Below, in pieces: positions 41,148-64,000 of a DNA stretch of 64,000 bases. Source of the stretch: Orbicella franksi (Eukaryota); the NCBI GenBank assembly GCA_964199315.1, contig OZ116702.1, positions 21,328,001-21,392,000 of the forward strand, read 5' to 3'. The translations under genes were made by a program, and so were the position numbers. Each line of letters opens with the position of its first letter. Positions within the stretch are counted from its first letter, which is position 1. The notes under the pieces are model-generated. The model was not told the origin of the DNA, searched no databases, and saw only the letters and a list, made by a program, of their open reading frames with translations.

Positions 41148-41151
41148 TAAG

Positions 41152-43784
41152 TGACTTTAGCATAACCCTTTGACGGACTATCAAGGTAAGCGCAATCTGA
41201 TTGGCTTTACAGACACCTACTATTGATTGATAAACGGTCTTTGCGGTTTTTACAGTTCTTTATACGTTACTTACAAACAAGGCGTCGTACCAAACCGGCA
41301 ATATGAAGGCTGAACCTGACGAATTTTACAACAACTTACAGAACGCAAAGATAATTATAAGCAATTTTTAGTGAGAATACACTAAATCTTGACATTAAAG
41401 ACAATGTCAACTTCAGTGATGTTGATAAAGTACAAAACCAAAACCCTAATAGCAACACAAAGGTTATGTTTTTTTAACATGCGTTTTATCGCCATGTTTA
41501 TCACCGCAGTTTCCGTGTTATTTCTTATCAAGCTACGATGGCCAGAGAAAAAGACCACAACAACAACTAGCTTTATTTGCATGACCATAAATACATACAG
41601 TGTTGCAAAAGCTTTAGTAACCTAAAACTAAAACAGTAACGATTATCGTGATCATATAATAATGTTATGATATAGCAATCAAGTTACATTGGTTTGATTT
41701 GAAAGCAGAATACTGCGTAGATCAAAGCAATATGAAATAAATTTTGCTAATTGAATATTAATATAATGATTTGAAGAAGTCATAAGTTCGCCAATGGCTT
41801 GTAACGAAGATAATTGTACAAAAGTCGGAATGATATGTTCTATTTTTTATATAAAATTTATTTCTTAGAATAGAGTATTTATTGCAATATATAAAAAAGT
41901 GAGATTCGTCTTCAATTTGATTAGATGCACAAATAGGGCAGAGTCTGTTAACCCTTTGAATACCAAACTTTCGCCAAAAAATACCGTTTTAACCGTTTAG
42001 TCAGGTTTTTTAGCTGCCATGACGCTAAATAAGCCTAAGTTTTGCTAAAAAAGCTTGTTTTTACTAAAAGGGGAGATTTTTCGAGGATTAGGTACAAAAT
42101 TGAGCAAAACTTCAGTTACGGGCATGCGCATAAGCCAAAATTTGGACTTCTTTTTTTTTGCCATTAACCGTTCTCAATTTCGTTTGTTGGCCCTTTCCTT
42201 TCTGTTTTTCTCTGCCCTTTTACACTGGCTACCTTTTGCATTGTATGTTCTTTCTGGCTGCAGTGAAAAGTTGGATGTTAATTACGGGCGAAGCCTAGAA
42301 ATGGCCAACATAATGTTTGATTTTACCGTTAGTTAAGTACGTAAGATCAAAAAAAAAAACGAGGGAAATCACAATATTCAGACATACTTAAAATATTAAA
42401 ATAATAACTATTTTTACCAGCGTGATGAAGATCTTGCGACATGAGAAAAATTTGTTTAACAATAGAGCAATTATCCTTACTTAGAAGATATGAGGAGTAA
42501 TTCGTGATTTCCTGATTGATAGCTATATAATGAGAGGAAACCTACCAAGTTCAGCTCTACATGCTACATTGGATACTTTATTGCTTAACTCTAAATAACG
42601 TTTACAGAATTGGAGATGTGTTTTTTCGATCTGGGAACTTTCCCAAGACTTGAGATCAGATTTTGCATATGCACCCCAGACTTCACTGTTATATGTCAAA
42701 ATTGGGGAGATCATTGCGTCGAAAATTTTATTCGCTAGGAATGGAGGTAGTTTGCTGAAATTTGCGTGTTTTCTAAGACTGAAAAGGGCATGAAGGGCCT
42801 TTCCTTTAAATTTAGCAAGTGCCAATGAAAAGTTACCCGTTGAAGAAATGAATGTTCCCAAATAAGTATAATTTTGAACAATTTCAACAGGCTGATTGTC
42901 GATATGAAAATTAGACTCTATACATTTCTTAGCACGTTTTTGAAAGATCATAACTTTGGTTTTTTTTGGATTGATACTTAACATCCATGTTCTGCAATAG
43001 GATGACAGAGTGTTAAGGCAATCTTGCAGTCCTATTTTTGATCTTGACAATATGACTAAATCTTCTGCATATAAAAGTGAATTTAATTTTGCGCCATTTG
43101 GTAGGACAAAGGGATCAGATAGAATTTTTTCAAAAGAGAATGATATGTCATTAATAAAGAGGTTGAACAGTAACGGACTCAAAATACAACCTTGGCGTAC
43201 CCCTCTTACGTATGGAAAGGGCCGTGTTTGATTTTGACCAATTTGTATGGAACATGTAGAGTCTGAATACAAGCTCTTTATTAAATTGAAAAAACAGCCA
43301 CCGATATTAATTTGTAAAAACTTAAATAAAAGTCCGTCATGCCAAACTGAGTCGAAAGCTTTTTTGAAGTCGACAAAACAAGCATAGATTTTTTCGTTGT
43401 GGTGATGCACGTATTTATCTACTAGATAAAAGAGTATTTACGATATGTTAACATACCCCGTATGTTAACATACCTCGTATGTTAACATATCCCGTAGCAA
43501 TAAGGACACCAATGCGCTGACGAATTAAAAATGAATAGAGCATTTCATGTCACGAAGCACGGTCAAAATACCATTAATTACAAACAGGGGGAAACCCAGT
43601 ACCACGTGAACATCTGTTTCAGTTATAATAAAACAATCTTACTTTGAACCGCAGAGCAAGCAAGCTGACCCCACGTGGACTGTAAGATCACTGGGGCGAT
43701 CTGCGTGATACATAATCGTGTGATGATGCATGATCGTATGATTGTCATGGTATAGCCCTCGCGCAAAGGAATCAATCTTTCATT
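41152..43784. repeat. Copy 1 of a ~600-bp local duplication (41152-41470 + 43478-43784), split by a ~2-kb insertion
   Basis: Colinear with 46055-46675 (gactatcaaggtaagcgcaatctgat...aaatcttgacattaaagacaatgtcaacttcagtgatgttga...atgttaacatatcccgtagcaat...catggtatagccctc...aatcaatctttca). Confidence 0.85.
42523..43410 (-). mobile_element. Non-LTR retrotransposon RT fragment (RTEX/L2-like), catalytic YADD altered to YAED
   Basis: CFVDFKKAFDSVWH, GVRQGCILSPLLFNLFIND, LLYAEDLVILS, CRAELGRFPL. Confidence 0.85.
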
Positions 43785-44144
43785 CCCGGGAGGGGATACT
43801 CCCTTATATGGGCTATATAAGTATGTGCGGCCCTAAAGGGTAGGGTTTTTCAGCCGTTTTGGTCATAAATAGGGTATGGTTTCAGCACTCGAGTATGGAA
43901 TTGGGTATGTTCAATAGAAGAAGTTACTTCTTCATCATTATCAATAAGACCGAAAACAAAAGCCCTTCAAAACTTATGTTTAGGGCAACTGTGCCAGCCG
44001 CAACGATCATAAATAGGGTATCGAATTTTAGGCCAGGTCATAAATAGAGTAGCAAAAATCGCAGATCTTGGTCATAAATAGGGTAAGGGTTTTGGGAAGT
44101 GGACCGCACACCCCTACCCAACTTTTCTGGAGTACCCCCCCGGG
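43785..44144. mobile_element. 360-bp MITE with CCCGGG termini and 8-bp TSD (hAT-like), in the 3' UTR of the membrane-protein gene
   Basis: TSD CTTTCATT at 43777-84 and 44145-52. Internal ggtcataaataggg repeats. Confidence 0.85.
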
Positions 44145-44185
44145 CTTTCATTCCATCATGTTGATTGCTCTCGGCTGGTACGCGT

Positions 44186-45827
44186 TCATTTAGTGTTCAT
44201 GTATAAAAACTTTGAAAATGGCTCTGTGCAAGTAAAATTAAGTTCATCACCTTTTGAAGTGTACCTGCTTTTAGCTACAACCAAAATAAACAAACGAGGC
44301 ACGAAATAACACAGAGTCACTGCAGTTAAAATAAAAACAACTAGCATGTGCTTTCGCCATTTCTTCCTCCAAACTCGCACCACAGCCACATTTAAATAAG
44401 ACATTTGCAGCCAAAACGAGAACGAGTTAAAAACGAAATCGATGCTTAGAGCAATGGACACGCGAATAAAGAACTCTGCTATAGACCCCAGACCTTCGTC
44501 GAGATACGTGAATTTGTACAGCTGTATGAAGCCGACTGCCGCTATCATTGCTGTTGATTCTCCGAGAATCATCTGAATGCTCATGTCCGCAATAAGGCGC
44601 ATGCTTCTTGGCGTGCGAAATTTATCTGCTCTCAACGTTTCTTCTGCCTCCCTGTCTCGTTTCAGCTTCCTGTAAACAAAGTACCAAAAATAATCTCGTA
44701 CGACAATGGTTAACCTTTCGAGCAAATCCACAGCGCCGTGTGCAAAACTCAGCCAAACAAACAGTCTACGTTCGACGAGGTCAGCTTGCAAGATACGAAA
44801 AACGATGGCGGAGGCGGTGAACAGGACGCTTAACAACACGTGTGAGTCACCGGGGTGAACAAAATCAATTCTTTGCGCCGCCAAACGCACGATGACCTTT
44901 GGTATGGCTGTTATTAGTGGGAGCCCGCCAGCAATAATAGTTCTAAGGATTTCGTTATCTTCCTTTGCGTACAAAGGAATCAGTATATAGACGAAGGAAA
45001 GCGTAAGAGGGATACCAAAAGCAAACTGAAGTGTCAGCATCGCCGCAACCTTCAAGGCCTTCTTGACTTTCAAATTCCTTAATGTCTGTGTTTTATTTGC
45101 TATTTCTTTGCCGAGTAGGAAACTATTCATAAGCACAATGAACACGAACAAACCATTCAATGGATATGATTTCCAGGATTTGTGATAATTTCCATAAATA
45201 TAGAAATAAAGTCTGAAACAAGTGTCAAAAAACGCGCAGAGGAGATTGAGGGTCAGCAGATTGAGTTTCTTGATTACAGGCCATCCAAATATCAACAGTG
45301 CAACAAAAAAAGTCCACATTTGAATAAAGTAGGCTCCAATTGTCCCCTCAGTAACAACAAATGCCTGAGTCTTTTCAGGAAGAGCCGTCCAGTTTGTAGA
45401 CTTCCAATTAAAGCATAAAATATCTGAAGCAAAATAATAAATCAGCATCAAAATAGGAAGCAAACCAAGTGCCACTCCACCGACAATCTGTATGTAGAAT
45501 GCGTGATTCATTGCCTCCCAAAGCGACATCCACCATTTTTTCGGTCGAGATTTTTTCCAACCCATTTTGCTGACGTCTCCTGGGGGTGGATCGTACTCCT
45601 GAAAAATCGTGTCTTGTTGATTAAACTTCTTAAAATCCTCCAAAAGATCCTCTCGTTGTCTTAGCGGAGTGTCCTCGAGTGCTTCCTGAGCTCTGCAGGA
45701 CTCGATCACACCAGCCGTGAACTTGTCGGTAAAAGAAACTAACAGGCCTTCGAGAAAGGACATAGTGACTGCCATCTTTACAGAGAGTTTATGTACGATA
45801 CTGACGTTTCCTGATTCTTCTTGCGTC
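44186..45827 (-). CDS. Uncharacterised polytopic membrane protein (529 aa from ATG 45775; ~9-10 hydrophobic segments), one large exon
   Basis: Intact 1590-nt ORF with alternating hydrophobic stretches and charged loops. Acceptor ttttgtag|G at 45828/45827; the 52 nt before the ATG are open in frame (TQEESGNVSIVHKLSVK-M), so an upstream exon is possible. Confidence 0.8.
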
Positions 45828-46054
45828 CTACAAAAGTAAAAAGTTCTTAAAGCTTTCCGAAGTCTCTAAAAAAAAACTGGCAGAAACGTCAAGTTAACTT
45901 TGTTTTTTAGTTGACTGCATGCAGTACAGGACGTTTTTTTGTTTTACTGACGGTAATAGAACACGAGTCACAAGCTGTTTTGGCTGTGCCACGAGCATCA
46001 TGCGATCAACTGTTTTTGCATCATGGGACTCGGCTGTTGTGTTAGAAGAGCTTT

Positions 46055-46725
46055 TACTTTAGCCTAACATGTAGACTGACTATCAAGGTAAGCGCAATCT
46101 GATACAGAAACCTGCTATTGATTGACAAAGAGCCTTTGCCGCCCTTGCATCTCTTTATACGTTACTAACAAAAAAAGGTGCGGTACCAAATTAAACAGAC
46201 AATATGAAGGCTAAACCTGCAGAATTTTACATCAACTTACAGAACGCCGATAATTATCAGCAATTTTTACTGAGAATACATTAAATCTTGACATTAAAGA
46301 CAATGTCAACTTCAGTGATGTTGAGGAAGCACAAAACCCTTATAACAACACAAAGGTCATGTTAACATATCCCGTAGCAATGAGCACACCAATGTGCTGA
46401 CACGTTAAGAATGAATAGACTATCTCATGTCACGAAGCACGATCATGATACCATTAGTTATAAACAGTGGAAAACCCAGTGTCACATGAATATCTGTATA
46501 ATAATAATGAAACAATTTTACTTTGAACTGTAGCGCAAGCAAACTGACCTCACAAGGAGTCTAAGATCAATGGGGGCGATCTGCATAATGTATGATCCCG
46601 TGATGGCGCATGATTGTCATGTATGATCGTGTGATTGTCATGGTATAGCCCTCTATCAAAGCAATCAATCTTTCAAAGCAATAGTTCTTGGTCAGTAAAG
46701 TTTAGTTATGCCATCATATTGATTG
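46055..46725. repeat. Copy 2 of the local duplication, an orphan copy of the membrane gene's 3' flank
   Basis: Similar to 41152-41470 + 43478-43784 and, at its right end, to 44145-44175 just after the stop codon (gagaacaatcaatatgatgg versus gagagcaatcaacatgatgg on the - strand). Confidence 0.8.
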
Positions 46726-47669
46726 TTCTCTGTTTACACATGTAACTCACTATTCAAACAATGCAGTGGGAGATAAACTAAGAATAAAGCCAGGATCCGA
46801 GCCAGAATCCGAGCCAGGATTCGAGTCAGGACAGTGTCGAATTTGTAAAGCCCGCGAGTGTATTTATATAGATATATATTTTTATTTATTACTAGGTAAA
46901 TGAAAAATAGTTTCATGGGAGAGAAAATCGTCGTTTGAATGAAAAACTATTTCAGTTTACGAGAACATCCAGGAACACTGAAAGTTTTTGATACCTTAGT
47001 AGACTTACTAGTCAATTTCTTTTCAATAATACTAATACATTTCATTTTGGCGGCGCCCAAGTGTATTTCTACCAGAAAACTTGACTTGCCACGGGGATTC
47101 TAATAGTTGGATTTGTTCACTAAAAATGCCGGCAAGGGCTTCGATCGTTTTTGCTGTAGGAATGTATAAGGCTCCTTTTTGTGTAGAGTTTCTACAGCTC
47201 TGATACATTAATGTCGAGTTTGATTTTATACAGTGCAAAAAATGTTGAAATTTTAAGAAATAAAGAGGGCGTTTTCGTGCCGAACACGGCAATATTTAGT
47301 CGTGCAAAGAAGTTTGATCGGGGCAGATTTTGATCACCTGCTATGTAACCTCTGCACGTAGCGCAATCAACAAAACAACGTTATAATTTGTTATTTTTGG
47401 CAAGCTTCGTCCAAACACTTGATTATACCCACGTACCTAAAATTTACTCCTTGTTTACAAATCGTTATCAAAAATTTAGTCGGTGGATGGTTTGCCGGCC
47501 GTCTCTTGTCCGTGCGGTAAAGTTACTTGCCCGAGAGTAAAATGTACTTGTCCCAGACGAGCGGACGGGATGGGAGTTTCTTCGAGTCCTGCACTAGCTA
47601 TCAAACTTTCTGGAATACAAGTTCAAATGTTCAAATTTTCAGATTTCAGTATATGTGTAATACATGTGG

Positions 47670-47875
47670 CAAGACGCCGCCCAAAGCAATCCTGGAGGCG
47701 AAGTGTGTAATACGAGCTCGCCAAGAAGAATATCACTTGGATAGAGGCAAAGAGAACTGCCAAAAATTGAGTCAGGTGGAGGTCCATGGTTGACGCCCAA
47801 GGCTCCCCAACAGGAGAGAAGATGGCCTAATTTATCGTAATGCACAAACAAACAAACAACAAACAAAGATATGAA
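47670..47875 (+). mobile_element. 3' end of an RTE-clade LINE
   Basis: Reads RRRPKQSWRRSV...KKNITWIEAKRTA...RWRSMVDA with a frameshift, then a (CAAA)n tail. Confidence 0.7.
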
Positions 47876-48536
47876 CTGTAAGAAAAGTTCTTTAAAAATT
47901 TAAAATCTGGTTATTGCTTCTGCGGGAAGATGGATTATTTTTCCAGTGCTGGCAAGAGTTTGAAGTGATATTTCATCAAAGAAATTAAAGCTTTAGTTTT
48001 TAACGCACATTGACCTGTATTTCTGAGGCGTTCTGAATAGATATTTCCCCGAAATTGGTACTCTGGATTTAAAGATGCGCCGATACTCTGGGGCTTTCGA
48101 ATCGATCCGATACGTGGAGCGCGCGGTCGGTCTCGCGAGCGTGCGCGAAAATATTTTCGTGGCAGCTGATGTTCAAGCCCGCCCAAGCGTGAGATCTTGT
48201 TATGGCTACACTAAATGCAGATCGCCGATCAATCTTCACTGAAGCCGCTTTGTCTTGCACGTTAGGCTTATTAATTGACAGGAATCCTTGAAATAGAACT
48301 TTCTCTTTTCGCAGCAGCTGTATCAGAGCGGTAAATCGTTTGCCATATCTTATCAGTTAGGCTTCAAAAGAGATCGCCAAACTAATACGCGTCGAACAAC
48401 AACTTATGAATCAGTGTGGTGCGGAAGTTATAGCACTCACTTCACCTTCATTTCATTTCATTTTACGTTCCAATTTGGTTGATTGATTCTGAATGCATTA
48501 AATCAGATTTCAACGTAAAGGATGCGTTGCACGCAC

Positions 48537-48585
48537 TATATCTATAGTGGACAACAAGATACCCCTGCTGTCCACTATAGATATA
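48537..48585. repeat. Perfect 17-bp-stem hairpin (tiny MITE-like)
   Basis: tatatctatagtggaca-N15-tgtccactatagatata. Confidence 0.85.
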
Positions 48586-48740
48586 CATTACTTTAGTCGA
48601 ACACAATCTTGTAATTACTGCATACAAACTCAGTCATCTGCAATCCAGTAATTACTGAATACAGCTACTTTAATAACATTCCAGTGATTTGGAGAGCGGG
48701 CCAAAGTGATTACAATAGCTTACCTCGAGTCTGTTAATGG

Positions 48741-48955
48741 CTACCAAATCACTTTCTATGGATCTGTTAGTTAACTAACGAAATCTGTATCATCGACTTC
48801 AAAGAAGGTTGCTTTGAATGCTAGAAAATACTACCATTCAAAATACTACCAAATCATTTTCTGTGGATCTGTTAGTTAACTAACGAAATGTGTATAGTCA
48901 ACATCAAATAAGGCTACTTTGAATGCTAGAAAATACTACGATTTAGCAATTATAT
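48741..48955. repeat. 105-bp tandem duplication (2 copies)
   Basis: ctaccaaatca(c/t)tttct(a/g)tggatctgttagttaactaacgaaat...ctttgaatgctagaaaatactac at 48741 and 48846. Confidence 0.85.
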
Positions 48956-49179
48956 ACTGAATACAAAATGACAGAAATGAAATATTGCGGAGCCCAGTGA
49001 TTTCATCAGGGAGACTATCAAAGTATGCGTTCCGGTGTTAGTTTCCATAACGGATTGACTTGGTTGTATTTTCTGTAGTTTTTCTTAAGTACATAACTGC
49101 TAATTTGTCCTGTTTTGTAATATTCAGCGCAGTTATATGTCAGAAAGCAGTCACAGCACAAGTAACTGAAGTTTACTTA

Positions 49180-49960
49180 GAGTATTTCTGATTGATATCA
49201 TCTTTTATGTATGCGTTGCTGCTAGTAATAACACGCTAAATGGACCTCAGTTGTGTCCGCCGTAACTGCTGTCTGCATTAACTGCTTGATTATTTTAAAA
49301 TATTGCTTTCTATGCCCCTAATTAAGAACCAAATTCACAAAATACAACCCGGTAATCGGTTATACAAACATCAGTTACCTTATGTATTTCTTCCGTGGTC
49401 TTTGCTACGACTGCTGTGTAACATCAAACTGCCTCAGTTCTTCGCTGATCATCACTAAATATTGTTATCCAGTTATTATGTACTGAACATTAAGTATTGA
49501 AGATACAACCCAGTAATCCGTTATGGAATTAAACTATCAAATAGCCATGTATACGTTTGTTCAAGTGACATTCTTAGTGGACCTTAGTCGTTTTTGCAGT
49601 GATTGCTCTCTAACGAACATTAAACTGCGATGATTACTAAAAAATATTGTTAACCAGTAATTATGCACTGAATTAGTATAGAAAATACAGCCCATTAATC
49701 CGTTATGGAAACTATTTAACATCTCTTTCTGCGTTCGTGCAAGTAATAGTCTTAGAAGACTTCAGTGGTTTCTGCTTTCACTGCTGTTTTTTTAACTGCG
49801 TTCATTCCTTAAAACTATTACTATTCAGTAATTATGTACCGAATACAAACTAAACAAAACTATCAATACAACTCAGGAATTTCTGTCAGGGAAATTAAAA
49901 ATCATCTATGTATGCGTTCGACTTCAGTCGTTTCTGCTGAGATTGCAGTCTGACATCAAA
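49180..49960. repeat. Degenerate ~160-180-bp tandem array (at least 4 units)
   Basis: Recurring atacaacc(c)...taatc(c/g)gttat at 49342, 49503, 49685 and 49866, and cagt(a/t)attatg(t/c)ac(t/c)gaa at ~49470, 49655 and 49826. Confidence 0.6.
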
Positions 49961-49969
49961 TTCACTTCG

Positions 49970-50554
49970 CTACAAAATATTACAGTTGCATTCACATGAA
50001 CAAGTAGGAGAGTCAGCGTCAGGTCTGGCTGGAGTAGAGCTAGATCTCGGGGAAGGCAATGCTCTGGTCGTAGACGGTACCGCTCTGCCTGGTAGACCGC
50101 GTGCCAGCCTTTGCAGACGACCCTCAAATACCCTCAACGGTGAAATGTAGTTGTCTTCCAGCCAGCATCTCTTAAAGAACATGATCTTAGCTACTCTCTT
50201 CCTTTCTCCTCCAATTAGAACGTTGTCTGACACAGCCAGCATGTGAGTGACTGAACTCAACTCAATGAACTTATTTCTGCTTCCCCCACAGTCTTCGCTG
50301 GGGAAGAATACTTTGCCAATCAGCTGATCTGGGCTGAGAAGTAGCACCAGTGCCAACAAGGCGTCGATTTCTGTGTCATTCAATAAATGGTAACCCATAT
50401 AGTTCCTCAGCCTGTTGAGGTTAGGATCGTCAAGCCGAATAACAATTGCCACACAGTCAAGGTAGTACATCAGTTTGGCTGTTGGACTTCCTGGCACTGT
50501 AACCTTGGTCCCCGCGTTTTTTATTCCAACTCTTTCCCCAATAAGTGCCGCCAT
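49970..50554 (-). CDS. Uncharacterised ~194-aa protein with Cys-rich C-terminus ending in a CaaX box (CNIL)
   Basis: Intact ORF. Likely start MAALIGERVG (ATG 50554), 19 nt after an acceptor ttatcttgtag|A at 50574/50573. Globular-looking core, Pro/Ser/Arg-rich linker, and C-terminal CSCECNCNIL*. Confidence 0.75.
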   Translation of the reverse strand: MAALIGERVGIKNAGTKVTVPGSPTAKLMYYLDCVAIVIRLDDPNLNRLRNYMGYHLLNDTEIDALLALVLLLSPDQLIGKVFFPSEDCGGSRNKFIELSSVTHMLAVSDNVLIGGERKRVAKIMFFKRCWLEDNYISPLRVFEGRLQRLARGLPGRAVPSTTRALPSPRSSSTPARPDADSPTCSCECNCNIL

Positions 50555-52452
50555 ATTGTGGGCTTCAGTTTGTCTACAAGATAACAGAGCTTCCATTTGA
50601 ATCTCAAACAACAGTCTCGACTTCAATTATAACGTTCTTATTGGTGCAGATATTTTTGCATTTTTTCACACCTTAATTCAATAAGAACGAAAATCGTTTC
50701 GAGTCTTCAACGGAGTTTGAACTTCCTAGTATTAAGAATGACCCAAAATTACTTAATATTTTCTTTTCGTCTTGTATCTGGATGATAGTCATTCGTTGAA
50801 GACTTACGGGTTAAAACTGATGCATGCCGGATAAAAAAAGCCAAATCAGTCGAAAGATAACGTATGAAGAAGCCTGCTGTAAAAGTCATAACACTCATAT
50901 TCCCTTCTGATCACCTGTTTTCAGTTGTCAGCTTTAAAGCTGCGTCGTTTAAAGATCTCATACGGCTTAGTGGCTTTGCGCGCGCGACATTGAATTTCTT
51001 ATTCGATTGAAAGACGAACGGAAGACGATGCACCGTTACTCTCGGCATTTTCATTGAGATCAAGGCGTGCGTCCCTCTTTTTTAGTAATTTAAGTGCATT
51101 CTCAGAGAACAAAATGATGGCCATACTCGAATGGTTTTGAATGAATTTTGCACAGTCTCTTACGACGAAAAGCGAATGGTAACGAAAGTGACTGTTGTGA
51201 GAGGTGTTTGTCATCGTCGTTTAAAATGATTGAAAGGATACTGAGTTAAGTTGATCGTCTCTTGTTAGCGTTACACCAGGGCTAGGGTCTCTCTATTTAA
51301 TGGACCCTGAGAACAGTTCCTTGAAGACCAACAGGCAGCATACTTGCATAATTTTGACAGTACATTATTTATTGGCGAACTCCAAATTATTTGACATTGC
51401 AACTGTGATTCCCGACTCTGATAGAAATGACGTCCGACCCACTACTTGTCGACGTCTACTTCGGTTTCCATAAGATCGTAAAACTAGTACAAGTCCAATG
51501 AACAAATCATAAGTGCCAACCGTTTGACTTGCAGTTTTGGCTGATTAATTAGCATGGTCATGCAAGCCTTCGCTTGAATGCAAGAACCAATCTCGCAGCC
51601 TGTTGAACCTTACCCTTACTTTTCCAGTTCTTTGCTTTTCCTTTTTAGTCCTAACTGGGTTCAAAATGTCGACTAAAGGGCTTGTAGATAGCAAATTGCT
51701 CTCATGTTATTTATGAAAGAGTGATAAAAAGAGTCCTACCTGTGACTAGTTCTGCCCTCACTGAATTTATGTTGGACGCCATTGATTAACATATGCATTA
51801 AAATGATCAGCTTAACAATTCCGTTGTTTAATGTTTTGACATCCCGGCGACAGTGCAGTGCAGCTCGTTCGTGCAAAATGATATCCTCTCCTCTGAAAGT
51901 GCTTTTCGTTAGGGACTATTAGTTTGATGGCATGAGCAGTTACTGGATAAGATAATTTGAAATGCGACTGGGGACAAGCACCAACAAGCAACTCGGAAAT
52001 GCGTTGAATGATTTCTATTTCCTTAAACTTGTATACTTAAAAATTAACAACAAAATCAGACTCCGGCAGATAGAACTATGCGTTAACTTACAAACATATG
52101 CTTCTGCAAGAGCAAGAAAAGATCTGGGAACAGAGTAAACAACAGTATTAGAATTTTCCTTATGAGCAGGCTCTTGTTGAGCGCTTCCCGAGTATTATCA
52201 AGTACATGTAAAGGAACACCTACTGTTAACAACGCTTGAAACTGCGGCGGAAATCTTGAACGTCCTGCACACTTCAGTCAGCAATACGATCAATCTGCAA
52301 GAACAACGAAGTAAACAATTGCGCAGGAGGAAAATCGAGAGGACAGACCGAATCGCCTGAGATCGAGGTTGAAGTACTGAAGTTTTTGTTCACGTGGTTT
52401 AGATTGACGTCTCAGCGTCATACAAACCGTCTAGAAAGACTGTTGTAATTAA

Positions 52453-54036
52453 GGTATCAGTAAGGGGAAAATTTGCAATTTTGCATAATTTTACTTTTTT
52501 AAGCGGTTGGATAAATCTTAAAGTAATCTTTTAGATAAAAAAAAACTCCACGAAAAAATCTTATATCTGCCGCTAGTTATTGCGCGAGAAAGATTGTTTT
52601 GCATATTAATTACTTAATTGAGAGTTGACAAGTTCTGTCAAATGAATTAATTATCGAGGCAAGAAGTCACATGACATCAAGATCATGCTGAGTTGACACG
52701 CGATTCGCGCGCCATAATCAGTGCCGGATGTCTTCGAAGAAGACAGAGCGATCTTGCCCGTTTTCATCGGCTAAAGGAAGGCCAAAGAAGGCGAAAAACA
52801 CTTTCAACAAAGAGTGGGCCGCTAAATTAGCGGAAAGCGGCAAAGGGTTCGTTTTACAATCAAGAAAAATTGCTGGATGAACGCGACAACGATCGCAATC
52901 ACAAAGCCAGCGAGCAAGCCGAAATGAGCGCAAGCGGCGCTAAAATACTGTTGCGAGAAACTGTCGAAGCAGAGGAGATTGACGAAGAGAAGTGGACGAA
53001 ATTGACAGGCAGATCGATTGTACAAAATTAGAATCAGCAGTGCAACATGTTTTTTTTCTTACCCAGCTATTGTCATTTCTTCCAGTATTTTTGCCTTTGC
53101 ATCAACATCAGTCGATGTAGTCCCGTTTACGGCGTCCTCTCCAGCGTTTCCCTTTGTGCGCTTCCATTTTCTCGGGAACCTTCTACGGGTCTTTGGCATG
53201 TTAACAGTGACATGGTCATAATTTTGAAGATTAGTCAACCGATACGTGAAATTTCGAACGTTAATATAGTAAATCAAAAGATAATTTCACGTTTACTAAC
53301 TTTGGAATTCTGACTTCACACATGAAAAAGCGGTTTATTCACTGGTGAATAATTTACCGCGCGCCGTCGCGGAAATTTGTACCTGTTCCATGTTAACTGT
53401 CATAGTCCTATTGTTATACAGAAAGTTGATTCCTCTGCGGTGTCTCCCATGGTGTGATAATCTCATAACACTTGGATGCCGCCGAATTTTATTTTTTCTC
53501 TGTTTCTCGAAAGTAAAAAATAGGCGAGTTGTACGTGCATTTCGAGTTCCAGGTCGGCAGCCCCTGGACCAAATTGGCTGAAATTTGGAGAGAATGTTGT
53601 CAGAACGAACGCCGACAAAACCGTGTCTGCGAATTCTGATTACTCTTTTCATTAAAAAGTTATGCCTTTTTTTTCGCGGGCAGTCCTATTTTTTTCCTTT
53701 TTCTAACTTTATCCTCTTGTAAAATAATAACAAACGCATGTGCCAAAAATCTGAGACACGGTTTTTGAGGTCAATGTGTGAAGAAACGGATGCCATGTTA
53801 ATTGTTTTCTCCGACCTAAATTTAGCGGACGTATACCTTGATTTATGGGTTCGTGAAGCTTTGTAAATATATTCACATTTTCGAAACACGGTAAATTTTT
53901 ACCGTTTGAAACAGGTCAGGTCATAATCTGTAGTTATTAAGCTTCCAGTAAATATACGGTTTATATGGGTTTTTGTTGAAGCCACGAACGCTAGAGCGGA
54001 CCGCGCGCGGATGGTCAAATGGGTTATACTGATACC
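52453..54036. mobile_element. Internally deleted Kolobok-type DNA transposon (1584 bp) with remnants of two convergent ORFs
   Basis: TTAA TSD at 52449-52 and 54037-40; TIR GGTATCAGTA / TACTGATACC. + ORF remnant from 52728 (MSSKKTERSC...KGRPKKAKNTFNKEW...) and - ORF remnant from 53199 (MPKTRRRFPRKWKR...AKAKILEEM). Confidence 0.75.
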
Positions 54037-54687
54037 TTAATTTGATTAGATAAGACGTGTTTGCATTGTGTGTGTATATTTGGCTAATGGGGTAACTGAT
54101 ACTATTTAAAACGATTTGCCTGCTGACAGGTACTAGGAGAGGTCCAGATCGTAAAGTCTGACTGGTAGACGGATACTTTTTTTCTGCAGTTAAGCAGTTC
54201 TTTCTCGGGAAAGGAAGTATACGCCATGCTGGAATGATTTTAATGGCTCTTGATCATCGTCTCTAACAACTGCTCTTTGAAAGGAAAATGAACAATCACC
54301 TATGCAAAGGCCAATGTTATCTATTTTTAGTGTTACATTCTGTAGTTTTGAAACGTTAAAATAATAATGTAATTGCATCAAAATTGCTTTAGAACAACTT
54401 TCCATTGAGGGTGGAAAGCAATCCACATTTGTTTTGGTTTTGCTTTGCTACGCCTTGCGATTGGTTAGCAAAATTCCCGCCACTTTCATGTCAACCAATG
54501 AGGAGCGTGGTGATCACCGCGCGTGATGTCGTGTACGTAGTACGTACTCCTATTTGCGACGAATTCTGATTGGTCGTTCTCTGCTTTCTTCTGTTGTTAT
54601 TGGTCAAGCGGAGTAATTACTTTGGTTTTGGCTCTGCGAAACAGCATGTTGCTAGCTGTTCTGATTAGTACACGAGGATACGTAAAT

Positions 54688-54758
54688 GCCGAGTCAGGAC
54701 TGGAGCTGGGACTCGAGTTAGGACTCGAGCCAGGACTCGAGCCAGGACTCGAGCCAGG
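54688..54758. repeat. 12-bp tandem repeat (GGACTCGAGCCA)n, ~6 units; related 4-unit array at 46787-46833
   Basis: Seen directly at both loci, in the same orientation. Confidence 0.8.
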
Positions 54759-54879
54759 TTTCCCGCCATTTTAACCACGTGTTTGTCACATGAACAGTGA
54801 CAGCAAGCCATTTTTTCAAGCCGTGGCCAAAGGAAAGCTTCATTTTTTTTTTATGAAAGCCTTTACCTCTATACTGATA

Positions 54880-57800
54880 ATATTGTTTTCAGTAATACCC
54901 TGACCGTTGCTGGGTTCCCTGTATTGTTCATGTATTTTTCCCGCCGTTTAGTTCCCGCGTTTAAGTCACGTGACCTTTTCCAATGTGCATGTAATGGCGA
55001 ACGTCGGCAAACGTCGGCAAACGTGATAGTTGTGTGTTTGCGATTCACTCGAAGTAAAGACGGATAAGACGAATAAGACGGATAAAGACGCGGACGACTG
55101 ATGGAATTATATACAAGCAAACAGGAGCGTCTCATTGGAGGGTTAGTCGAATTAAAGTCAGTGAACTAGAGTGAATCTTGTCTATTGAAACCGAGAGAAT
55201 TGGACATTCGCCCTTCCAGTTTCTTTGATTCGCTGAATTACACAAGGTGTTTGGAATTTGTTTGGCTTCAAATCGTCGCTCTTGGACCATCGTTTCGTTT
55301 CTGTGGTTGGTTTTTGGTACCAGCATTATTTGGCCTTCAGTTGTAGTTTCGAGTTCTTCTATTATTGGTGGCGAACGATTTCTTTGTCGAAACTGCAACT
55401 TGGAAATTGCATGATTGTTTGCGATGTCGATGTGGGATCTTAGGAGCGATGATGGCCGAACCACGGCACATGAACACGCGGAAACTCCAGATGAGAAGGC
55501 GATGCGTTGGCCTCAGGTTTATTCTACAATGTCAGGAGCCCAGGGAAAAGAGTCGGGCTATTCTACAAGGGAAAATGGAGGGATTGATGTGCGTGTTTAA
55601 GAGAAAATTTGGAATGGAGAAGGAAACTTGAAATTGGACCGGAATGTTATTGAAAGAAGACAACCAAAGCTAACCGAAAAGGGCAAAGCTTATCGGCTCA
55701 CTGAACGAAAAAGGGAAAGAAACAAGCTCAAAAGAGAAATACAGTCACGGATTGCCAACATTGGAACACTTATGGGACTTGATAAAAATTTGGAGCTAGA
55801 CAGTGAGGAATCTGTGAAATTAAATGAGTGTTTAAAGAGTTTGGTGATCTTCATGAGGAGATACAAGAACTTCTCAGTGAAGAAGAACAAATACCTGACA
55901 CTCAGGTGTATGACAACCTGCATACTGAAGTAGAGCTTATTTGTGAAACTGTCCAGAAATGGATGATTGATGATGGTCGACGCAGTAATGAGGAACGGAA
56001 GTCTACTAAATGGAGCGCAAAAACAAAGAACTCTAAAACTTCACATGCATCAAGCACTTCCTCAAGAGCAAGGGCTCTCCAAGCTAAGGCAGAACAAGCA
56101 GAGTTAGAAGCGAGGATTGCTCAACTTGGCAATGTTGAAGCTGCGAGGAAAGCAGCAGAAAGGGCAAGGCTAAGGGCAGATTTTGCTGCTGTCGCTGCTA
56201 TTAGCAAAGTCTACGAAGATGCGATTAAAGAAGATGAGGAGCAGTATTTGGGCTCTGATGACCCTGGTGAAGACCCAGAGTGCTACCATTGGCCTGCATT
56301 GCATGGACTATACCCACAGGAAACATTTGTCAAGGAAGGGCACAGCAGTCCCAGAGCACATGATGAAGAATTATTGAAGCATCCACATGCACCTGATCCA
56401 GCAGCAGGACAACGGAAAGATACCTTAAATACAAAGGCACCAGAATTTACCTTGCCAAACACTCCCTTGCAGCAAGACATTATTTATAGCAGTGGGGATA
56501 CCGTGAACCAAGCTGAAGGAGACTCTCACACCATTGCGAAGGCCAACTACGGACCTCGAGCACGGACGTCTGGGAAAAGATGGAGCTCAGAATGATGCAG
56601 CCACCACCTGCACCCACTCCATTTGTTGGTGATCCATCCTGGTACCTGCGGTTTAGAGCTAATTTCAAAGATGAAGTAGAGAATAGAGCTTCACTAACTG
56701 ATAGTGAGAAAATGAACTATTTAATGACTTACACAACTAGGAAAGCGAGGGAAGTTATTGAGAACTACCAAGGCCTACCAAATGGTTGTCACCTGGCTCT
56801 ACGGGTGCTGAAGCAGAGGTTTGGACTAAATGCTATGATTGTTGAGGCACTCAAATCTTCTGTTATTAGTGGTCCCAAAATAAGAAATGGTAACAGTGCG
56901 GCTCTTCTAACTCTTTCCGACAAACTTCAGGACTGTTGCTGGCAATGATCGAATTGCAGTCAAATGAGCTTGATTGTACTACGAACATGCGATAAATTTT
57001 TGACCATCTACCGGACCCCTTGCAGGCTAAATAGAGAAAGTCAGCTAAGTTGTACCATGAAAGGACAGGTGGCAAGGAGCCAACACTGAAAGAGCTTTCT
57101 GCATTCATTACTGGAGAGTCCCAAACCGAGAATAACCCGGTGTATAGAAAATCAAGCACCCCGACGGCAAGAGTTGGCAGTTGTAACAGATCCAAGAAAC
57201 AACTCTTCATGTTGAAACCAGCAAGTGGGAAACCATTTATCACCATGACAACAGAGGTTGCTAAAACACATGCTAGTATTAATTAAGGGCCGGGAGAGGT
57301 CTTACCAGCGGAAGACGATCAAGTGGTTGGAAGTGGCCGGAGCCAAGGTGAAGCTTGTAAGGTTTGCAAGGGAAAGCATAGAATTTCGAGGTGTTTAGTC
57401 TTTCCGACAAAGAGTTTACGTCGGCGGCGTAATGCACTGTGTTACCGTTGTCTATCTACTTCTCATGTGAGGAAGAGGTGCCCCGAAAAGAACGGTTATA
57501 TATGGAAAAGGACTTTGCTCACCCCTTAAGTCACCATTCACTGTTACGTGCACCTGGGCTGACAATGCGTGAAGTCATGGAAACTGACAGGAATGTTGAT
57601 CAGAGTATTCCTGCAAGGACTGACCTGACTGTATACAATGCAACTAAGGAGAATTCGAAGCGAAGTTTTGTGCTGCTGGAAGTAGTACCTCTGTCTGTTG
57701 TTGCTGACAATGGAGCCATTGTTACCACTTATGGTCTGCTAGACACAGCTGCCGTTAGTTCCATGATCACGTCACAACTTACAGAAAAACTGAAGCTTCG

Positions 57801-59125
57801 AGGTACTCCCGAGAAAGTACTCATCAATACTGTGACTCGGAAGAATCATGACTGTGAATTAGCCAAAGTTAGCTTCCTGGTCCGCCCAGCTGATCAAGAT
57901 GGACCCTGTTTCCCAGTCCATCATGCTTTGACAGTAGAGAGTTTCAATGTGTCAGACCGGTACTGCCCAGATAAGCTGGATCTGTCAGATGGTCCCACCT
58001 TAAGGAATTGGAGTTTCCGAATGTTCCAGGGGACTTGAACGACGTCTCAGTCCTCATTGGTCAGTATTGCTCCAGTGATTTGGTTAAACGTCGGTTCACA
58101 AACTGCTGTTTATTAAAATTCTTTAAAACTCTATAAACACCGTGAGAACTAAAATAAAAGATACAAATAAACTACACATTAGCTTGCGAAAATAACAGGA
58201 TATAAATACATTTAAAATGCTTCGAAAGTTACAAAAGTGAAAGGAGAGAACTTAAGATCGATTTACAGCAACGGTAAAACGATATTGTATACAACTTGAC
58301 TTTATCTGAAACCTTAAGACTCAAATTTACAATTCACAAGCGATGAAACTGAACTAAACGACTAAAGATACAAACCGCTTACATAAACAAACTAAAATAG
58401 CGTAAAAAATAATTACCTTGGTGCTGCCTTGATCACCAGAACAATGATAAACTTGGAGAAACTTGTTAACTTGCAGTGAATTAACAGATCTTGTGTCAAC
58501 TGATCTTGCTAACGAAAAAACTACTCTTTTATAACGCTAGTTGGGTGTCGCGGCACTACGCGTAAGCTTTCGCGACACCACAGAACTTACTAGAAAGACC
58601 TAGGGAAAAGGGTAGCGTACACGCGAAACAAATACGCATGAAAAAGCCTTAAATAACTGAATACACGTTCAAATAAACTTCCAATGACTTAAAAATAGTA
58701 CTCTTAAGGCTACAAAGTATAGTAATTGAGCGTAAAACAGCTTAAATTAGAAACCCTTTGAAAACTTGCGCAATGTTGCGCGTGCAAATTTGTTGCAGAG
58801 GCGCGCGCCACTTCAAGTGTCGTACATCGCGCGCGCACGACTTAACTGTTGCAGCTACGGTCAGGACGTGCCACAGGCTCACATAGTGCTACATTACTGC
58901 TGGGGAGACAATCCTCAGTCTGAGCCGTATGCATCGAAGACCCCATTTGGATGGTGTGTAGCTGAGCCAACAGACAGAAAGGAAGATGAGAGCAAGCCAG
59001 TTGCACTTTCTGCTTTTGAATTTGACTGGGCTGAGGATGAGTCAACCATGTAACTCCCGAGCAAGTAGAGAAGTTTTGGGCTTCTCAGTCGTACAGATTT
59101 GGAAATGATGGTGACAGTGCCAACA
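54880..59125 (+). mobile_element. Decayed BEL/Pao LTR retrotransposon (possible 5' LTR ~54880-55325, gag, Zn knuckles, aspartic protease), truncated before RT
   Basis: SSTSSRARALQAKAE gag motif; PTPFVGDPSWYLRFRANF...KQRFG (DUF1759-like); CKVCKGKH...C and CYRCLSTSHVRKRC knuckles; YGLLDTAA protease; GQDVPQAHIV...PYASKTPFGWCV. Many stops and frameshifts. LTR limits are uncertain. Confidence 0.85.
58065..58859 (-). mobile_element. Solo LTR (~795 bp) nested in the BEL/Pao element
   Basis: 5-bp TSD GTCAG at 58060-64 and 58860-64 splits the codons of IGQDVPQ. Termini tattgc / gctacg look like mutated TG...CA. AATAAA on the - strand ~50 bp from its 3' end. Confidence 0.75.
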
Positions 59126-62100
59126 GTAATTTATCCTCACTGCATATCTATTGTTGCGATCACGGTAGACTAAGTTATGGGAGGAATCCGCTCCCGGCCC
59201 CGACAATTGCCATGCTCCACCGGCACCGTTTGCTGTCCAAACCGACGCACAAAAACGAGGAAAAACACCAGGACACCCCCGAGAATGCTAAACCTGCTTT
59301 ATTCTACAAACCTGCTTTCCATAACTCAGACCCCCCTACTCCCAACTTAAAACGTACTGTGCAAATACAGAAAAACGCTTAAGCGATTAAACTATTGGTT
59401 GGATGTTTGCCGGGTGAGAGACCGCGGCAGCGACAGTGGAAGCTCGGGGCATGACAGACTCCAAAAGGTTAAGAGTACTAGCCGCGTGAGAGACACGCGC
59501 ATAGTGCCTGGCCATGTTGCTACTTTTCCACCCCAAATACTGGGCGATCTCCTCCGGAGAACAACCCAAGATGCTAAGGGTGTTAGAAAGCCCGACCCTG
59601 AAACCATGGGGCGTTTCCCTACTACAAAGTTTCGCCTCGGAGAGATACACACGCAAACGATTATTATCTGCCGAACCAAGAAACGGCCTCTCCCCGTCAA
59701 ATTTCCCATGGTCGGAAGCTCGGAAAAAATATCCCTCGGACAAGGAGACCCCTAGCGCTTGGCAGGCACGAACATAACAATCCAACCAAAAAACAGGGCA
59801 AACATCCGGGTCTCGAAAGGGGACAAGAACAAACTCACGGGGAGATCCCTTGCGAACTGTTTTCGTAAGAGACAATCTAATTAAAAAGCCTTCCCGATCC
59901 CTTAACCTGAAAACTTGGCTGCAAGAGAGCCGCCCTAAATCCGATGCTCTGTCCCCAGTGAAAAAATCCACAACAAAGAAGGTGGCATCCCTAACAAGGA
60001 TATATTTACTAACAAGGGAAAGCGACGCACTTGCCGCTATTTTCACCCTAAAGTGACCGATGAGTGACTTGTACTTCGTGAAGAAAAGAGGGACTGCCTG
60101 TTTCGGAGTGACCGCCAAACTCGCTTGCTCTTTCCTGGTGAATTTTAAGTATTCCTTTACCAGCGAGTGCGAAACAGGGTTTGCATGATTGAAACGGCCT
60201 AACTTATTATAAATAGCACGCACCCTTCCGATGAGGGAATCCGCGGAACCGGCCGCTAAACGGCGGGGGCATTTACAAACTGTCCTATCATATGTCCTAA
60301 CGTGAACAACCGCTCTCCCTGTTCTGTCTTTACTAATAAGAAATTTAACGATATCTTCGGAGGTGGTGGAGGGCATGGCCTTCGGGGCGAAAGAGAGGCG
60401 AGGAAACTTGACAACTGTCGCTCCAAGGAAGACTTTTGCTTCTGATAGGGTTTGCTACTTGACAAAGATTTAAAGTTCACGAAACGGCTATTGATCGCAG
60501 ACATGGCCAGACCAGGTTGGACAACCAGAGTAAAAGGGGCTCCAATTGATATACCAACAAGCCTGGCAAAAATTCGCATCATGATCGTTTGGATAGAGAC
60601 AAGACGTACACCGCCGGGCTGCTTTCCAGGGGCGTGCAACCTGAAGAAAAGAACTGTATGTAGGTAATATGCTCGTCTTAACAAAATTGGTGATGCCATT
60701 ATTTAACAGACGCAACGAAAAGCCCGAACGTCCCATTGTAGCGGTCTAGGGAACCAGCCTGGAGCCGTAGCAGAAGGATAAAACAAAACCAAATCGTCGC
60801 CCTTTCGCCCCAGGAGAAATCGATGAACGCTCGTGGCTTGCAATAACGCCCACCAGTACCGACGGGGCTGGATATCCGGCACGATTATCGTGAAGGGGTG
60901 CTGATACTGCTGGTCAATAAAGAAACGGAGGAGCGGACCGATAAGCACAAAGGGGGAAAAAACATAAAGGTTTTCCCTGATAGGCAACTGATGCGCAAAC
61001 ACATTGATGCCGGATGACTCAGGGGTGTCGCACGGCGTGAAATGCAGAACACGATTACCAAGCTGATCACGGCGGCAGTTACTGTCGAGTGATATGAGAT
61101 CAAAGGTATGTGGTCCAAACATTCTCTGGACACGGGACCACGTTTCCTCAGAAAGGGTACAATCGAGGTCTGAATGTCGACGCGAGGGAGCGTCGGCCGG
61201 GTTCCCGGCCCGAAGGAACGTATTGAATGTCGATCAAAAAGTTGAACTCTTGGTTGCATCACAAAATAGCCTTAATCACGTCATTTATCTTGGAGTTACT
61301 TCCACCCTCGCTCTGTCATGACCCCAACAGAGCTCTGCTATCCGTGTGAACATCAACGCGGGAATTCCGAATCCTTGACTTGAAAGCATCTAAAGCACAC
61401 AACAAGGCCTTCGCCTCCAAAAAATGTATGCTGCCCGATTCTTCTCGCCAGTAATCTCCAGCCTCCATTCTGCCGTTATCCGTCATCAAAACGCCTCCCC
61501 ACGCTCGTTTAGAAGCGTCTCAATACAAAGTGACAGCGAAATGTCTCTCCGATCTCCATGGCAAACAATCCGTCCAGTCATCTAAAAATCGCCAATATTC
61601 CAATTCAGATTGCAGCCGCTTTGGAATTACGTACAAGACCAGCAACGGCTTTGAAGATTTCGCGAAGGTACAGCTTGCAACCAGCTACAGCCAGGTTGAA
61701 GGAAACAGCCTTACCGGCAAAACGCTGAAGGGTTTTTAACGTTACCCTCTTAGAAGCTAACATGTTTTCCCTGAGTACCTTAAATTTGACTTTTTTCTCC
61801 TCTGGGATCAGGAAAACTTGCCGAATAGAATCACAGGTGAAGCCAAGGAATGTGACAAACGTAGACGGACTGCATTGAGATTTACTCAAATTGACAAAAT
61901 AGCCGGCCTCCAATAGCAAGAAACAGAGAATATACGCCGCGGCCTCAGCGTTCTGGTGGCTAGAGGCCCAAGGCAGCTTAGACGATTGTACTAAAAGCTG
62001 ACCAACGTGGCGATCATCTATGTACTGGGAAAGTGGAAAACCGTACGAACGTGCCGCACCAGAGACTGCAAGGCCCAAATTGTGATAGGGAAAAGCACTA

Positions 62101-64000
62101 GCCTTCCAGCCAAATGGTAGCGTACAAAATGTAAAGTAAAAACCCTGCCACTGCAGGCCGAAAAAGGTACGGGAAGACGGGTGGAGACAAACGTGCTGGT
62201 AACCGCTTTTCTCATCGAAGGTCGTCTGGTAATGCCCCGGCAAGACATACTTTGGTAAGTCCGACAAATGGTCCAGTTTAAAAGGAAGATCCTTGATTCA
62301 CAAATTAAGGTAACGTTCGTCATAGCAAAGGCGAGGTTTTGAGGGCTCAATGGTGAGGGGAAGGAGGTGAGACCCGGCCAAACTCGCCCCAAACCGACAA
62401 GACTTCGGCCGACACCCATTGCAAAATGGTAGTGGAAATGAAATCCGAAAATCGGGCGCAAGACTTGGAGTTTTCCAACACGATTGGAGGAGGACGATCT
62501 GAATCAAAACTTTGACCATTGAAATCGCCCTTGAAATGGGCCAAAAATTGTTCAACTTTGACCCCTTCGTTAATTATGGCCATAAGGTCGACGTGCTCAT
62601 TGTCGACATCGGACAACAACTTCTCCCAAACCGCCGGGTGTGCGTGCAACGATTCCGCCTGAAAATCATCCGGATTTCCAAATCGGAGATTACGCAAAAC
62701 CCCAAGAGCTGGATTCTTCGCCACCATTGATGGGGAAGCCAAGGGGTCAACGAAAGGCTGGGTTCCCTTAAAAATATCACACCAAGAAGTCTCTACTGTC
62801 TCGCGGACGGTAACTGCGTCGCCCAACTTTCTCCGAAAAGCAAAGGATGCAACCTAAGGGAACAAGTCAAAAGCGGACAGAGATAAGGAACAGGGAAAAC
62901 AAACGAGAACCCAAACCTTCGTTGACCCCAGGCTCCGAACCAGGTCCAGAATCGAGGCACAGAGAAAGCTCCCCCAAGGTCAACGAGGGCGAATGGGGCA
63001 GGGGCACCCTGGGGAACTAAAATATATGAGGACAAAGGCCCAAACAAACTGCAAAAAATGGCCTACAACAAGCCAGCTGACCACACAAATTGAGACAACC
63101 GATGATGAAATAAACTTTATTAAAGCAATATCGAAGGCGCCAGCTGACAACACAACTGGAGTACGCCGAAATACAAATGCCAGGGAAAAAATGATAGAAA
63201 AACAAACTAGCTACAGAGCAGACACTTGACAAAACAATGATCGCTTACTCAAACGCTGGGCTAACTATTACCGCCTCTGAACCCCCGTGGGGAGCGCGAT
63301 AAGTGAACTGAGAAGGACGGTGATTGTAAAGACATTCGCGTGCCATGTGGCCCAAGCGATTACAAGTAAAGCAACGAACATTTCCGTAAGGCCTCGGGCG
63401 GGTGAAACGAAATCCACGCGACTGAGCTGCCGAGACCCTAGAAGAGGATTTCAGGATGGAGGTGGCCTCCTTCGCTATCTTGGCCCGCACAGGATCCCTC
63501 ACGAAACCCACAAGAAGCCTCTGCAACGACCTCTTTGTCCAGTTGATCCAACCTTGCCCTAACTTCATCGAGAGCCTCCGCGTACATGTCGGCCTTCTCG
63601 TGTGCCTCATTCCTCGCGAGACGAACCAAAGACTGTAGCAGCTCGACCGCTCCATATCGATCAAACATGTTTAACGGGCGGTTTAGGTGCCTGCGGAGAG
63701 TTATCAACGCGTCCTCCGTGCTCCTGCGCGCTTTCTCGTCCTCCAAGGCTTTCAACTTCCTCTCAAGAATTTGAATACGATCGACTGGCTGAGAAACAAG
63801 AAGGAACACGAGGAATGAAAATCACATCTGCTGTCCGGCTGACCAGAACAGAACAAGAACATAATCAAACCGAAAATAGCCCCGGAAAAGAACGGCTCAA
63901 AATCGCCACAATCAACCCCCCATTCCTTATAGAAACGCCTCCTGCGTTCCCACTTCAAATCCTGCGCCTATACACGACTTTCATAAATGGCGGACCGCTC
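59125..64000 (-). mobile_element. DIRS-type tyrosine-recombinase retroposon (gag-RT-RNaseH-MTase-ALOG/YR), degenerate, 5' end outside the window
   Basis: gag with CCHC knuckle CFTCNRLGHMAREC (63245-63809); RT with F...LPFGW...YIDD (61605-62267); RNase H with DAS/LEA/TDS and in-frame stops (~61150-61590); DIRS-type MTase-like domain DLISLDSN...NLYVFSPF (60703-61122); YR with GDRASD, HGFR, GW and HY residues (59387-60376). Confidence 0.9.
59387..60640 (-). pseudogene. Zn-finger + ALOG domain + tyrosine recombinase ORF of the DIRS element (frameshifted)
   Basis: WKAARRCTSCLYPNDHDANFCQAC, then SSLERQLSSFLASL..., then EDIVKFLISKDRTGRAVVH...CKCPRRLAAGSADSLIGRVRAIYNKLG...NPVSHSLVKEYLKFTRKEQA, then the YR catalytic domain. 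Confidence 0.8.

Follow-up and report, generated by a model that had tools for sequence, protein, structure and literature searches.

Plant ALOG proteins, exemplified by Arabidopsis LSH3 (8P5Q) and rice G1, are stand-alone regulators, and their signature domain has been described as a version of the N-terminal domain of a recombinase that carries a zinc-ribbon insert (Iyer and Aravind 2012, Biol Direct 7:39, PMC3537659). According to that study, ALOG outside streptophytes is confined to a novel class of DIRS1-like retroposons, which encode a gag with a zinc knuckle, a reverse transcriptase (RT)/RNase H, an adenine methylase that is inactive, and a recombinase composed of an FCS-type zinc ribbon, ALOG and a catalytic domain; this ALOG-bearing recombinase sets the class apart from all DIRS1 retroposons described before (PMC3537659). 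One active copy, with 159-bp terminal direct repeats, was reported from Ectocarpus, together with inactivated copies from Acropora digitifera, Nematostella, Branchiostoma, Lottia, Crassostrea, Saccoglossus and the starfish Asterina (PMC3537659). In the crystal structure of LSH3, the loop that joins helix 2 to helix 3 binds a zinc ion through 103-HxxxC...119-CxC, and mutating the zinc-coordinating residues abolished DNA binding (PMC10927535). Here, we describe a locus in the coral Orbicella franksi, within a stretch of 64,000 nucleotides (nt) of contig OZ116702.1 (hereafter "the window"), in which an initial annotation had reported an ALOG domain fused to the recombinase of a DIRS retroposon. 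We conclude with high confidence that the stretch concerned, 60122-60480, encodes the N-terminal core-binding domain of a DIRS-order recombinase of the ALOG-bearing class described in 2012, and that it lies in a dead copy of a low-copy family.

The family comprises four copies (C5, C2, C4 and C10) with 87-90% nucleotide identity, each of which is rearranged, deleted or frameshifted; over the DNA stretch aligned here, C2 and C4 are 90% and 82% identical to the window copy, respectively. In the window, the recombinase is encoded on the minus strand by the following parts, given in the direction of translation:

60557..60610, minus strand: N-terminal zinc ribbon (CTSCLYPNDHDANFCQAC, CxxC..CxxC), with a weak match to DZR (PF12773, E=6.6e-4, below cut-off)
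60556..60557, minus strand: frame break just past the zinc ribbon's second CxxC, where the window copy has one base more than C2 (alignment column 164)
60385..60456, minus strand: ALOG helix 1 (SKPYQKQKSSLERQLSSFLASLSP), in another frame than the remaining domain; 96% identical to the in-frame N terminus of C4
60383..60384, minus strand: frame break between helix 1 and helix 2, one base fewer than C2 and C4 (DNA alignment column 338)
60134..60376, minus strand: ALOG domain (helix 2, zinc knuckle, helices 3 and 4), the first 81 residues of a 329-codon open reading frame (ORF); matches to PF04852 and 8p5q_A
60290..60292, minus strand: Tyr29 (codon TAT) where HxxxC..CxC has its second zinc ligand; TGT in C2 and C4
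59387..60133, minus strand: catalytic domain of the tyrosine recombinase, uninterrupted up to the stop codon; PF00589 above cut-off, six catalytic residues

The 329-residue ORF (59387-60376, minus strand) contains, as written, the peptide in which the initial annotation had recognized an ALOG signature upstream of the recombinase core. We found that its ALOG piece (60134-60376) matches Pfam PF04852 (ALOG_dom) over profile positions 41-122 of 126 with E=4e-17 and 63.0 bits (cut-off 26.6), and the window ALOG scored 65.7 bits in a six-frame scan of the genome with the same profile; no phage-integrase SAM-like family was listed by Pfam for this piece even at E<=10. When all PDB sequences were searched by phmmer, the sole match was 8p5q_A, the Arabidopsis LSH3 ALOG domain (E=1.7e-6). 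In the alignment to 8p5q, moreover, Asp46 and Arg51 of helix 3 coincide with D131 and R136 of LSH3, the Asp and Arg that contact bases in the plant protein. Judged from the sequence, the ALOG match is genuine and far beyond chance. Profile positions 1-40 (helix 1) are absent from the ORF and are encoded at 60385-60456 in another frame, and the span 60122-60480 takes in the entire domain. Pfam returned no match for the 36-residue helix-1 piece by itself, the piece being too short, and its identity rests on the C4 sister copy, in which the ALOG match spans profile positions 13-125 in a single, stop-free frame. Helix 1 and the rest of ALOG also share one frame in the distant lineages L028, L014, L021 and L022 of the same genome, where the zinc ribbon is in that frame as well.

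Broken pieces were searched separately throughout. For structure prediction with AlphaFold, we took the ALOG domain of the C4 copy (L018:1495-1860), which is naturally uninterrupted and shares 79% identity with the window piece, and supplied 13 natural segments from the same genome as the alignment. The resulting model (mean predicted local distance difference test score [pLDDT] 73.8; predicted template modeling score [pTM] 0.64) has helices at residues 3-21, 33-43, 71-85 and 98-115, with a small hairpin insert separating the second helix from the third. A Foldseek search of the PDB placed 8p5q_A at the top (E=3.9e-5, probability 1.00, template modeling [TM] scores 0.59/0.56, 28% identity), and this was the only match at E<=0.001; it was followed by many Cre N-terminal domains (E 0.2-1, TM ~0.52). 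LSH3 coming first and Cre N-terminal domains next is the relationship that Iyer and Aravind proposed. The window's own 329-residue ORF, folded with 22 natural pieces from the genome, gave a model too poor for use (pLDDT 50.6, pTM 0.39). Thus, where the initial annotation had allowed for an N terminus matching generic phage-integrase SAM-like domains only, what we found was a strong PF04852 match, a Foldseek match of the C4 model to plant ALOG, and no SAM-like family.

In the same ORF, the catalytic part (59387-60133) matches PF00589 (Phage_integrase) with E=2.7e-8 and 34.2 bits (cut-off 27.1), in line with the proposed fusion of ALOG to a DIRS recombinase. All catalytic residues are kept (Arg143, Lys172, His257, Arg260, Trp283 and Tyr292), and the blocks FFxGDRxSDLG, TKTxRxG, HGFRxG, GWKS and HY are conserved in an alignment with pieces of other lineages. 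The spacing of the catalytic residues, H-3-R-23-W-9-Y, is the same as in Cre, where the corresponding residues are H289/R292/W315/Y324. Since all catalytic residues and a Cre-like spacing are present, the catalytic domain is formally intact as far as its predicted protein goes. The resemblance to Cre and to XerC-XerD is one of arrangement and fold: an N-terminal domain of similar helical fold (TM ~0.52, C4 model) precedes an R-K-H-R-W-Y catalytic domain with Cre-like spacing. In contrast, the zinc insert is absent from Cre and Xer, and sequence similarity is not detectable; the weak phmmer match of the catalytic domain to Cre in the PDB (E=0.71) covers Cre 289-333, that is, catalytic sequence only, and the other PDB matches are due to chance. 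Taken together, zinc ribbon (60557-60610), ALOG (60134-60456) and PF00589 domain (59387-60133) reproduce the recombinase architecture of the 2012 class.

The zinc site of the window copy reads H25-V-R-T-Y29...C34-K-C36, with three of four ligands kept (codons of His25 at 60302-60304, Cys34 at 60275-60277 and Cys36 at 60269-60271). Because cysteine is present in both sister copies, which carry four of four ligands, the tyrosine at the second ligand is a change private to the window copy; the substitution that the initial annotation had read in HVRTY is confirmed by TAT at 60292-60290. The window copy has thus lost, on the evidence of its predicted protein, a zinc-site feature that its family retains. 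The insert between ligands 2 and 3 was likewise said to be short, and it indeed has four residues (C-x4-C-x-C) in the window family and in lineages L025, L026, L028 and L029, as compared with 10-12 residues in the majority of the genome's other lineages; the LSH3 sequence has 12. In addition, the loop between helices 3 and 4 is ~6 residues shorter in the window family, and also in those relatives in which that part survives. The likeness to plant ALOG comprises PF04852, the four-helix bundle and the HxxxC..CxC knuckle that lies between helix 2 and helix 3 (the latter two in the C4 model), as well as the base-contacting helix-3 residues. It differs in that the domain is here the N-terminal part of a recombinase and not a stand-alone regulator, has no C-terminal tail with a nuclear localization signal, holds a ligand 2-3 insert of 4 versus 12 residues in LSH3, and is 28% identical to 8p5q in the C4 copy; the window copy in particular has one ligand lost and helix 1 out of frame.

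By analogy with LSH3, the ALOG four-helix bundle of an intact element would form a clamp on the DNA, opposite the catalytic domain, and read the sequence with helix 3 placed in the major groove, and the HxxxC..CxC zinc knuckle would brace the helix bundle, as in the plant protein. The RNA of such an element would, as expected of its family, be reverse-transcribed, and the resulting DNA would be integrated by the recombinase in a site-specific exchange of strands that uses Tyr292.

The recombinase forms the 3' part of an element whose coding regions follow one another in the order gag (CCHC), RT, RNase H-like, methylase-like, zinc ribbon, ALOG and recombinase catalytic domain, all collinear on one strand, and this order recurs in sister copies. 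The remaining features of the element and its interruption are as follows:

63972..64000 (continuing to window-coordinate 65785), no strand assigned: start of a 1.8-kb terminal inverted repeat (TIR) DNA element, not part of the DIRS element but inserted in its 5' region
63810..63971, minus strand: stretch upstream of gag to the insertion point; the sequence flanking the insertion on either side is homologous to the C2, C4 and C10 copies
63245..63809, minus strand: gag, which is divided between two overlapping frames and includes a CCHC zinc knuckle (PF00098, E=9.6e-6, 25.9 bits, cut-off 20.8)
61605..62826, minus strand: reverse transcriptase in two frames, with YIDD and an in-frame stop near 62297 (PF00078 and translation)
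61230..61600, minus strand: RNase H-like region with three in-frame stops (three-frame translation; DAS..GWGG and TDS motifs by eye)
60703..61227, minus strand: putative DIRS methylase-like domain, a 174-codon open frame ending with TAA at 60703 (position and homology)
59115..59386, minus strand: 3' untranslated tail; homology to sister copies stops near 59115-59122

Neither the RNase H-like region nor the methylase-like frame yielded a Pfam match. The latter, which we label putatively by its position, sits where the inactive methylase of the class was described (PMC3537659), and homologues of it immediately precede ALOG in 15 other loci of the genome. The zinc-ribbon motif is similarly kept upstream of ALOG in six other lineages and corresponds to the N-terminal zinc ribbon of the published class (PMC3537659). 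The DIRS element is homologous to its sister copies between 63971 and about 59115, and its 5' part extends outside the window to about window-coordinate 67275; the 5' terminal direct repeat is present and located outside the window, and no 3' terminal repeat was found in window 40001-59115. Two short interspersed repeats (58500-58858 and 58859-59127), both with many copies genome-wide at 81-96% identity, adjoin the 3' end in place of the missing repeat. Each end of the C4 copy bears a direct repeat of 176 nt, and the two repeats are 86% identical to each other. Gene order, with the RNase H and methylase labels putative, and the direct terminal repeats of the C4 copy agree with the Iyer-Aravind retroposons, as does decay by stops and frameshifts, which marks their metazoan copies too. 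The differences from that paper's text lie in the short knuckle and shorter helix 3-4 loop of the window family and its relatives, and in the catalytic domain of the window copy, which is one unbroken frame, whereas the metazoan ones are called fragmented. Compared more broadly, DIRS-1 of Dictyostelium and PAT-like elements share with the window family an RT, an RNase H, a methylase-like region and a tyrosine recombinase, without an aspartic protease or DDE integrase. The terminal repeats of DIRS-1 are inverted and accompanied by an internal complementary region, whereas those of the window family are direct.

Several lesions affect the window copy, consistent with the initial annotation, which had called it decayed. 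Some 58 codons between the two frame breaks, including helix 1, are out of frame. At the site of the break near 60557, the C4 copy has a 50-nt deletion; the direction of the change there was read from the distant lineages, because in these the zinc ribbon and ALOG share one frame. The TIR element (L033:7972-9785) has inverted ends of ~87 nt (48 + 39 nt), and the C2 copy shows the empty site of its insertion, with AT being the duplicated sequence. Its ORFs carry CCVPNC (THAP-like) and CxC..CxH (SWIM-like) motifs by eye and gave no Pfam match. With two 1-nt breaks, a tyrosine in place of a zinc ligand, stops and frameshifts in pol, the TIR insertion and a lost 3' repeat, the window copy cannot act; it is, to judge from these predicted effects, dead, old and inactive. 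Between copies, synonymous divergence (dS) was 0.135-0.146, with a ratio of nonsynonymous to synonymous rates (dN/dS) of 0.62-0.68, and the four copies are old and evolving nearly neutrally. In the C2 copy (G000:C2:38411929-38414669; L007-L009, L037), the 3' part of the recombinase has the opposite orientation to the remainder of the element.

When the 497-Mb genome was scanned in six frames with PF04852, at least 34 matches were obtained, 33 of them above cut-off, which fall into several divergent lineages, and no matches were found in 14 control genomes; as such scans score best candidates only, the counts are lower bounds. All of the 24 ALOG loci that we examined (the stronger ones among the 34 matches) lie in DIRS remnants: methylase-like, RNase H or RT pieces occur upstream in 19, and a recombinase stretch occurs downstream in the other five (L022, L027, L030-L032), as seen within short loci. 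Among the 24, no solo or domesticated ALOG gene was found. Nor was an intact ALOG-DIRS element found among the best candidates, which were the ones scored, since matches covering at least 90% of the recombinase query all carry stops, except for the window ORF, and the shorter stop-free matches are fragments. The suggestion that active copies or ALOG-only derivatives may exist in this genome therefore gained no support. On C15 (G000:C15:2.80-2.98 Mb; L010-L012, L027, L030, L031), near-identical ALOG-recombinase remnants form a cluster repeated at least three times in ~180 kb, which looks like a segmental or tandem duplication carrying a DIRS remnant.

Some observations weigh against reading the stretch as part of a dead ALOG-DIRS element. 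The fold match comes from the C4 sister copy and not from the window's own broken domain; the RT match to PF00078 (RVT_1; E=3.9e-5, 23.9 bits) is under the 29.6 cut-off; and the RNase H and methylase labels are putative, being drawn from position and motifs. Moreover, of the matches that span 90% or more of the recombinase query, the window ORF is the sole one free of stops, and its open frame, its preserved catalytic residues and a dN/dS somewhat below 1 leave residual function of a truncated protein just conceivable. Taken further, the same facts could mean that the 329-codon ORF has been kept as a gene, possibly a domesticated one, encoding a recombinase with a truncated ALOG still used by the host or by the element family: 329 codons run without a stop where sister copies are frameshifted, six of six catalytic residues are kept, and dN/dS is 0.62-0.68 rather than 1. 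We nevertheless regard a retained gene as very improbable, given that the ORF starts inside the domain, after a frame break and with helix 1 lost; that it has a replaced zinc ligand, and LSH3 loses DNA binding when such ligands are mutated (PMC10927535); and that the exact ORF protein is absent, by exact look-up, from a collection of 15 billion proteins. A dN/dS slightly below 1 is expected if the divergence partly dates from the family's active phase, and by a rough, uncomputed estimate so long a frame would survive by chance in ~1 in 10-20 decayed copies.

Two further explanations concern what the domain is and what kind of element it belongs to. Because ALOG is a derived version of the SAM-like fold, and Cre N-terminal domains come next in Foldseek, the N-terminal domain might be a generic phage-integrase SAM-like core-binding domain, its likeness to plant ALOG being superficial. 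This has next to no chance of being correct, and we rejected it on the PF04852 score, which is 36 bits above cut-off while no SAM-like family is listed at E<=10, on the matches to LSH3, the sole PDB hit by sequence and the sole one by Foldseek at E<=0.001, and on the presence of the ALOG-specific HxxxC..CxC insert between helices 2 and 3. Alternatively, the recombinase could derive from a Crypton-type DNA transposon that lies beside an unrelated retroelement, as Cryptons too carry tyrosine recombinases and the window copy has no 3' terminal repeat. This is extremely unlikely, and we rejected it: the methylase-like frame, zinc ribbon, ALOG and recombinase adjoin one another and are collinear with RT; in the C2, C4 and C10 copies, this block has stayed joined, with a nucleotide identity of 87-90%; and a methylase-like domain precedes ALOG in 15 further loci. 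In the three sister copies, the upstream RT and methylase-like stretches belong to the same insertion as the recombinase.

A dead ALOG-DIRS copy being the preferred explanation, the finding is a correct rediscovery of what is already known: the initial annotation rightly traced the domain to the DIRS1-type retroposons of Iyer and Aravind, and the link between ALOG and DIRS was published in 2012, corals included (PMC3537659). As the origin of plant ALOG from a DIRS1-type recombinase has also been published, the result matters little as a discovery and is useful as annotation. In the ESM Atlas, clusters with the same architecture carry the name 'ALOG/Phage integrase family domain-containing protein' and are commonest in Cnidaria, and there is an unnamed one that is commonest in Mollusca; our literature search found no later work on metazoan ALOG-DIRS elements. 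The small additions made here are the short-knuckle variant, the genome census, and a natural Cys-to-Tyr loss at a ligand of the class that is essential in LSH3.

The sole lead of wider interest, if true, concerns how the recombinase might be expressed. Polypyrimidine-AG sites, each in phase 0, are located exactly at the starts of the gag, pol and recombinase coding regions, and a candidate leader frame lies farther upstream (slashes mark the putative splice junctions):

Window-coordinates 67033-66914, outside the window (L034/L033), minus strand: 40-codon ATG-led leader frame with donor GAG/GTAATT, kept in all four copies
63789/63788, minus strand: acceptor-like site of gag, AG/C, phase 0
About 62855/62854, minus strand: acceptor-like site of pol, TTAG/GTTGCA, phase 0
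60641/60640, minus strand: acceptor-like site of the zinc ribbon-ALOG-recombinase region, TTCAG/GTTGCA, phase 0

The leader start codon reads GTG in the C4 copy. A phase-0 polypyrimidine-AG site occurs 30 or 42 nt before the first zinc-ribbon cysteine in five of six lineages examined (all divergent, except that L014 and L019 are one family), and most of these lineages have no ATG upstream of the zinc ribbon. We tentatively propose, at somewhat less than even chances, that the ALOG recombinase has no start codon of its own and that one leader exon may be spliced alternatively to the phase-0 acceptors of gag, pol and recombinase. Much less likely, and in our estimation very improbable, is that some of the ALOG-only frames in this genome are domesticated regulators.

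Beyond the 3' end of the DIRS element, on the plus strand at 55828-58038, lies a fragment of another retroelement with broken frames, in which a gag with DUF1759 (PF03564, E=3.1e-9) is followed by a weak aspartic-protease match; DUF1759 in gag is typical of BEL/Pao elements.

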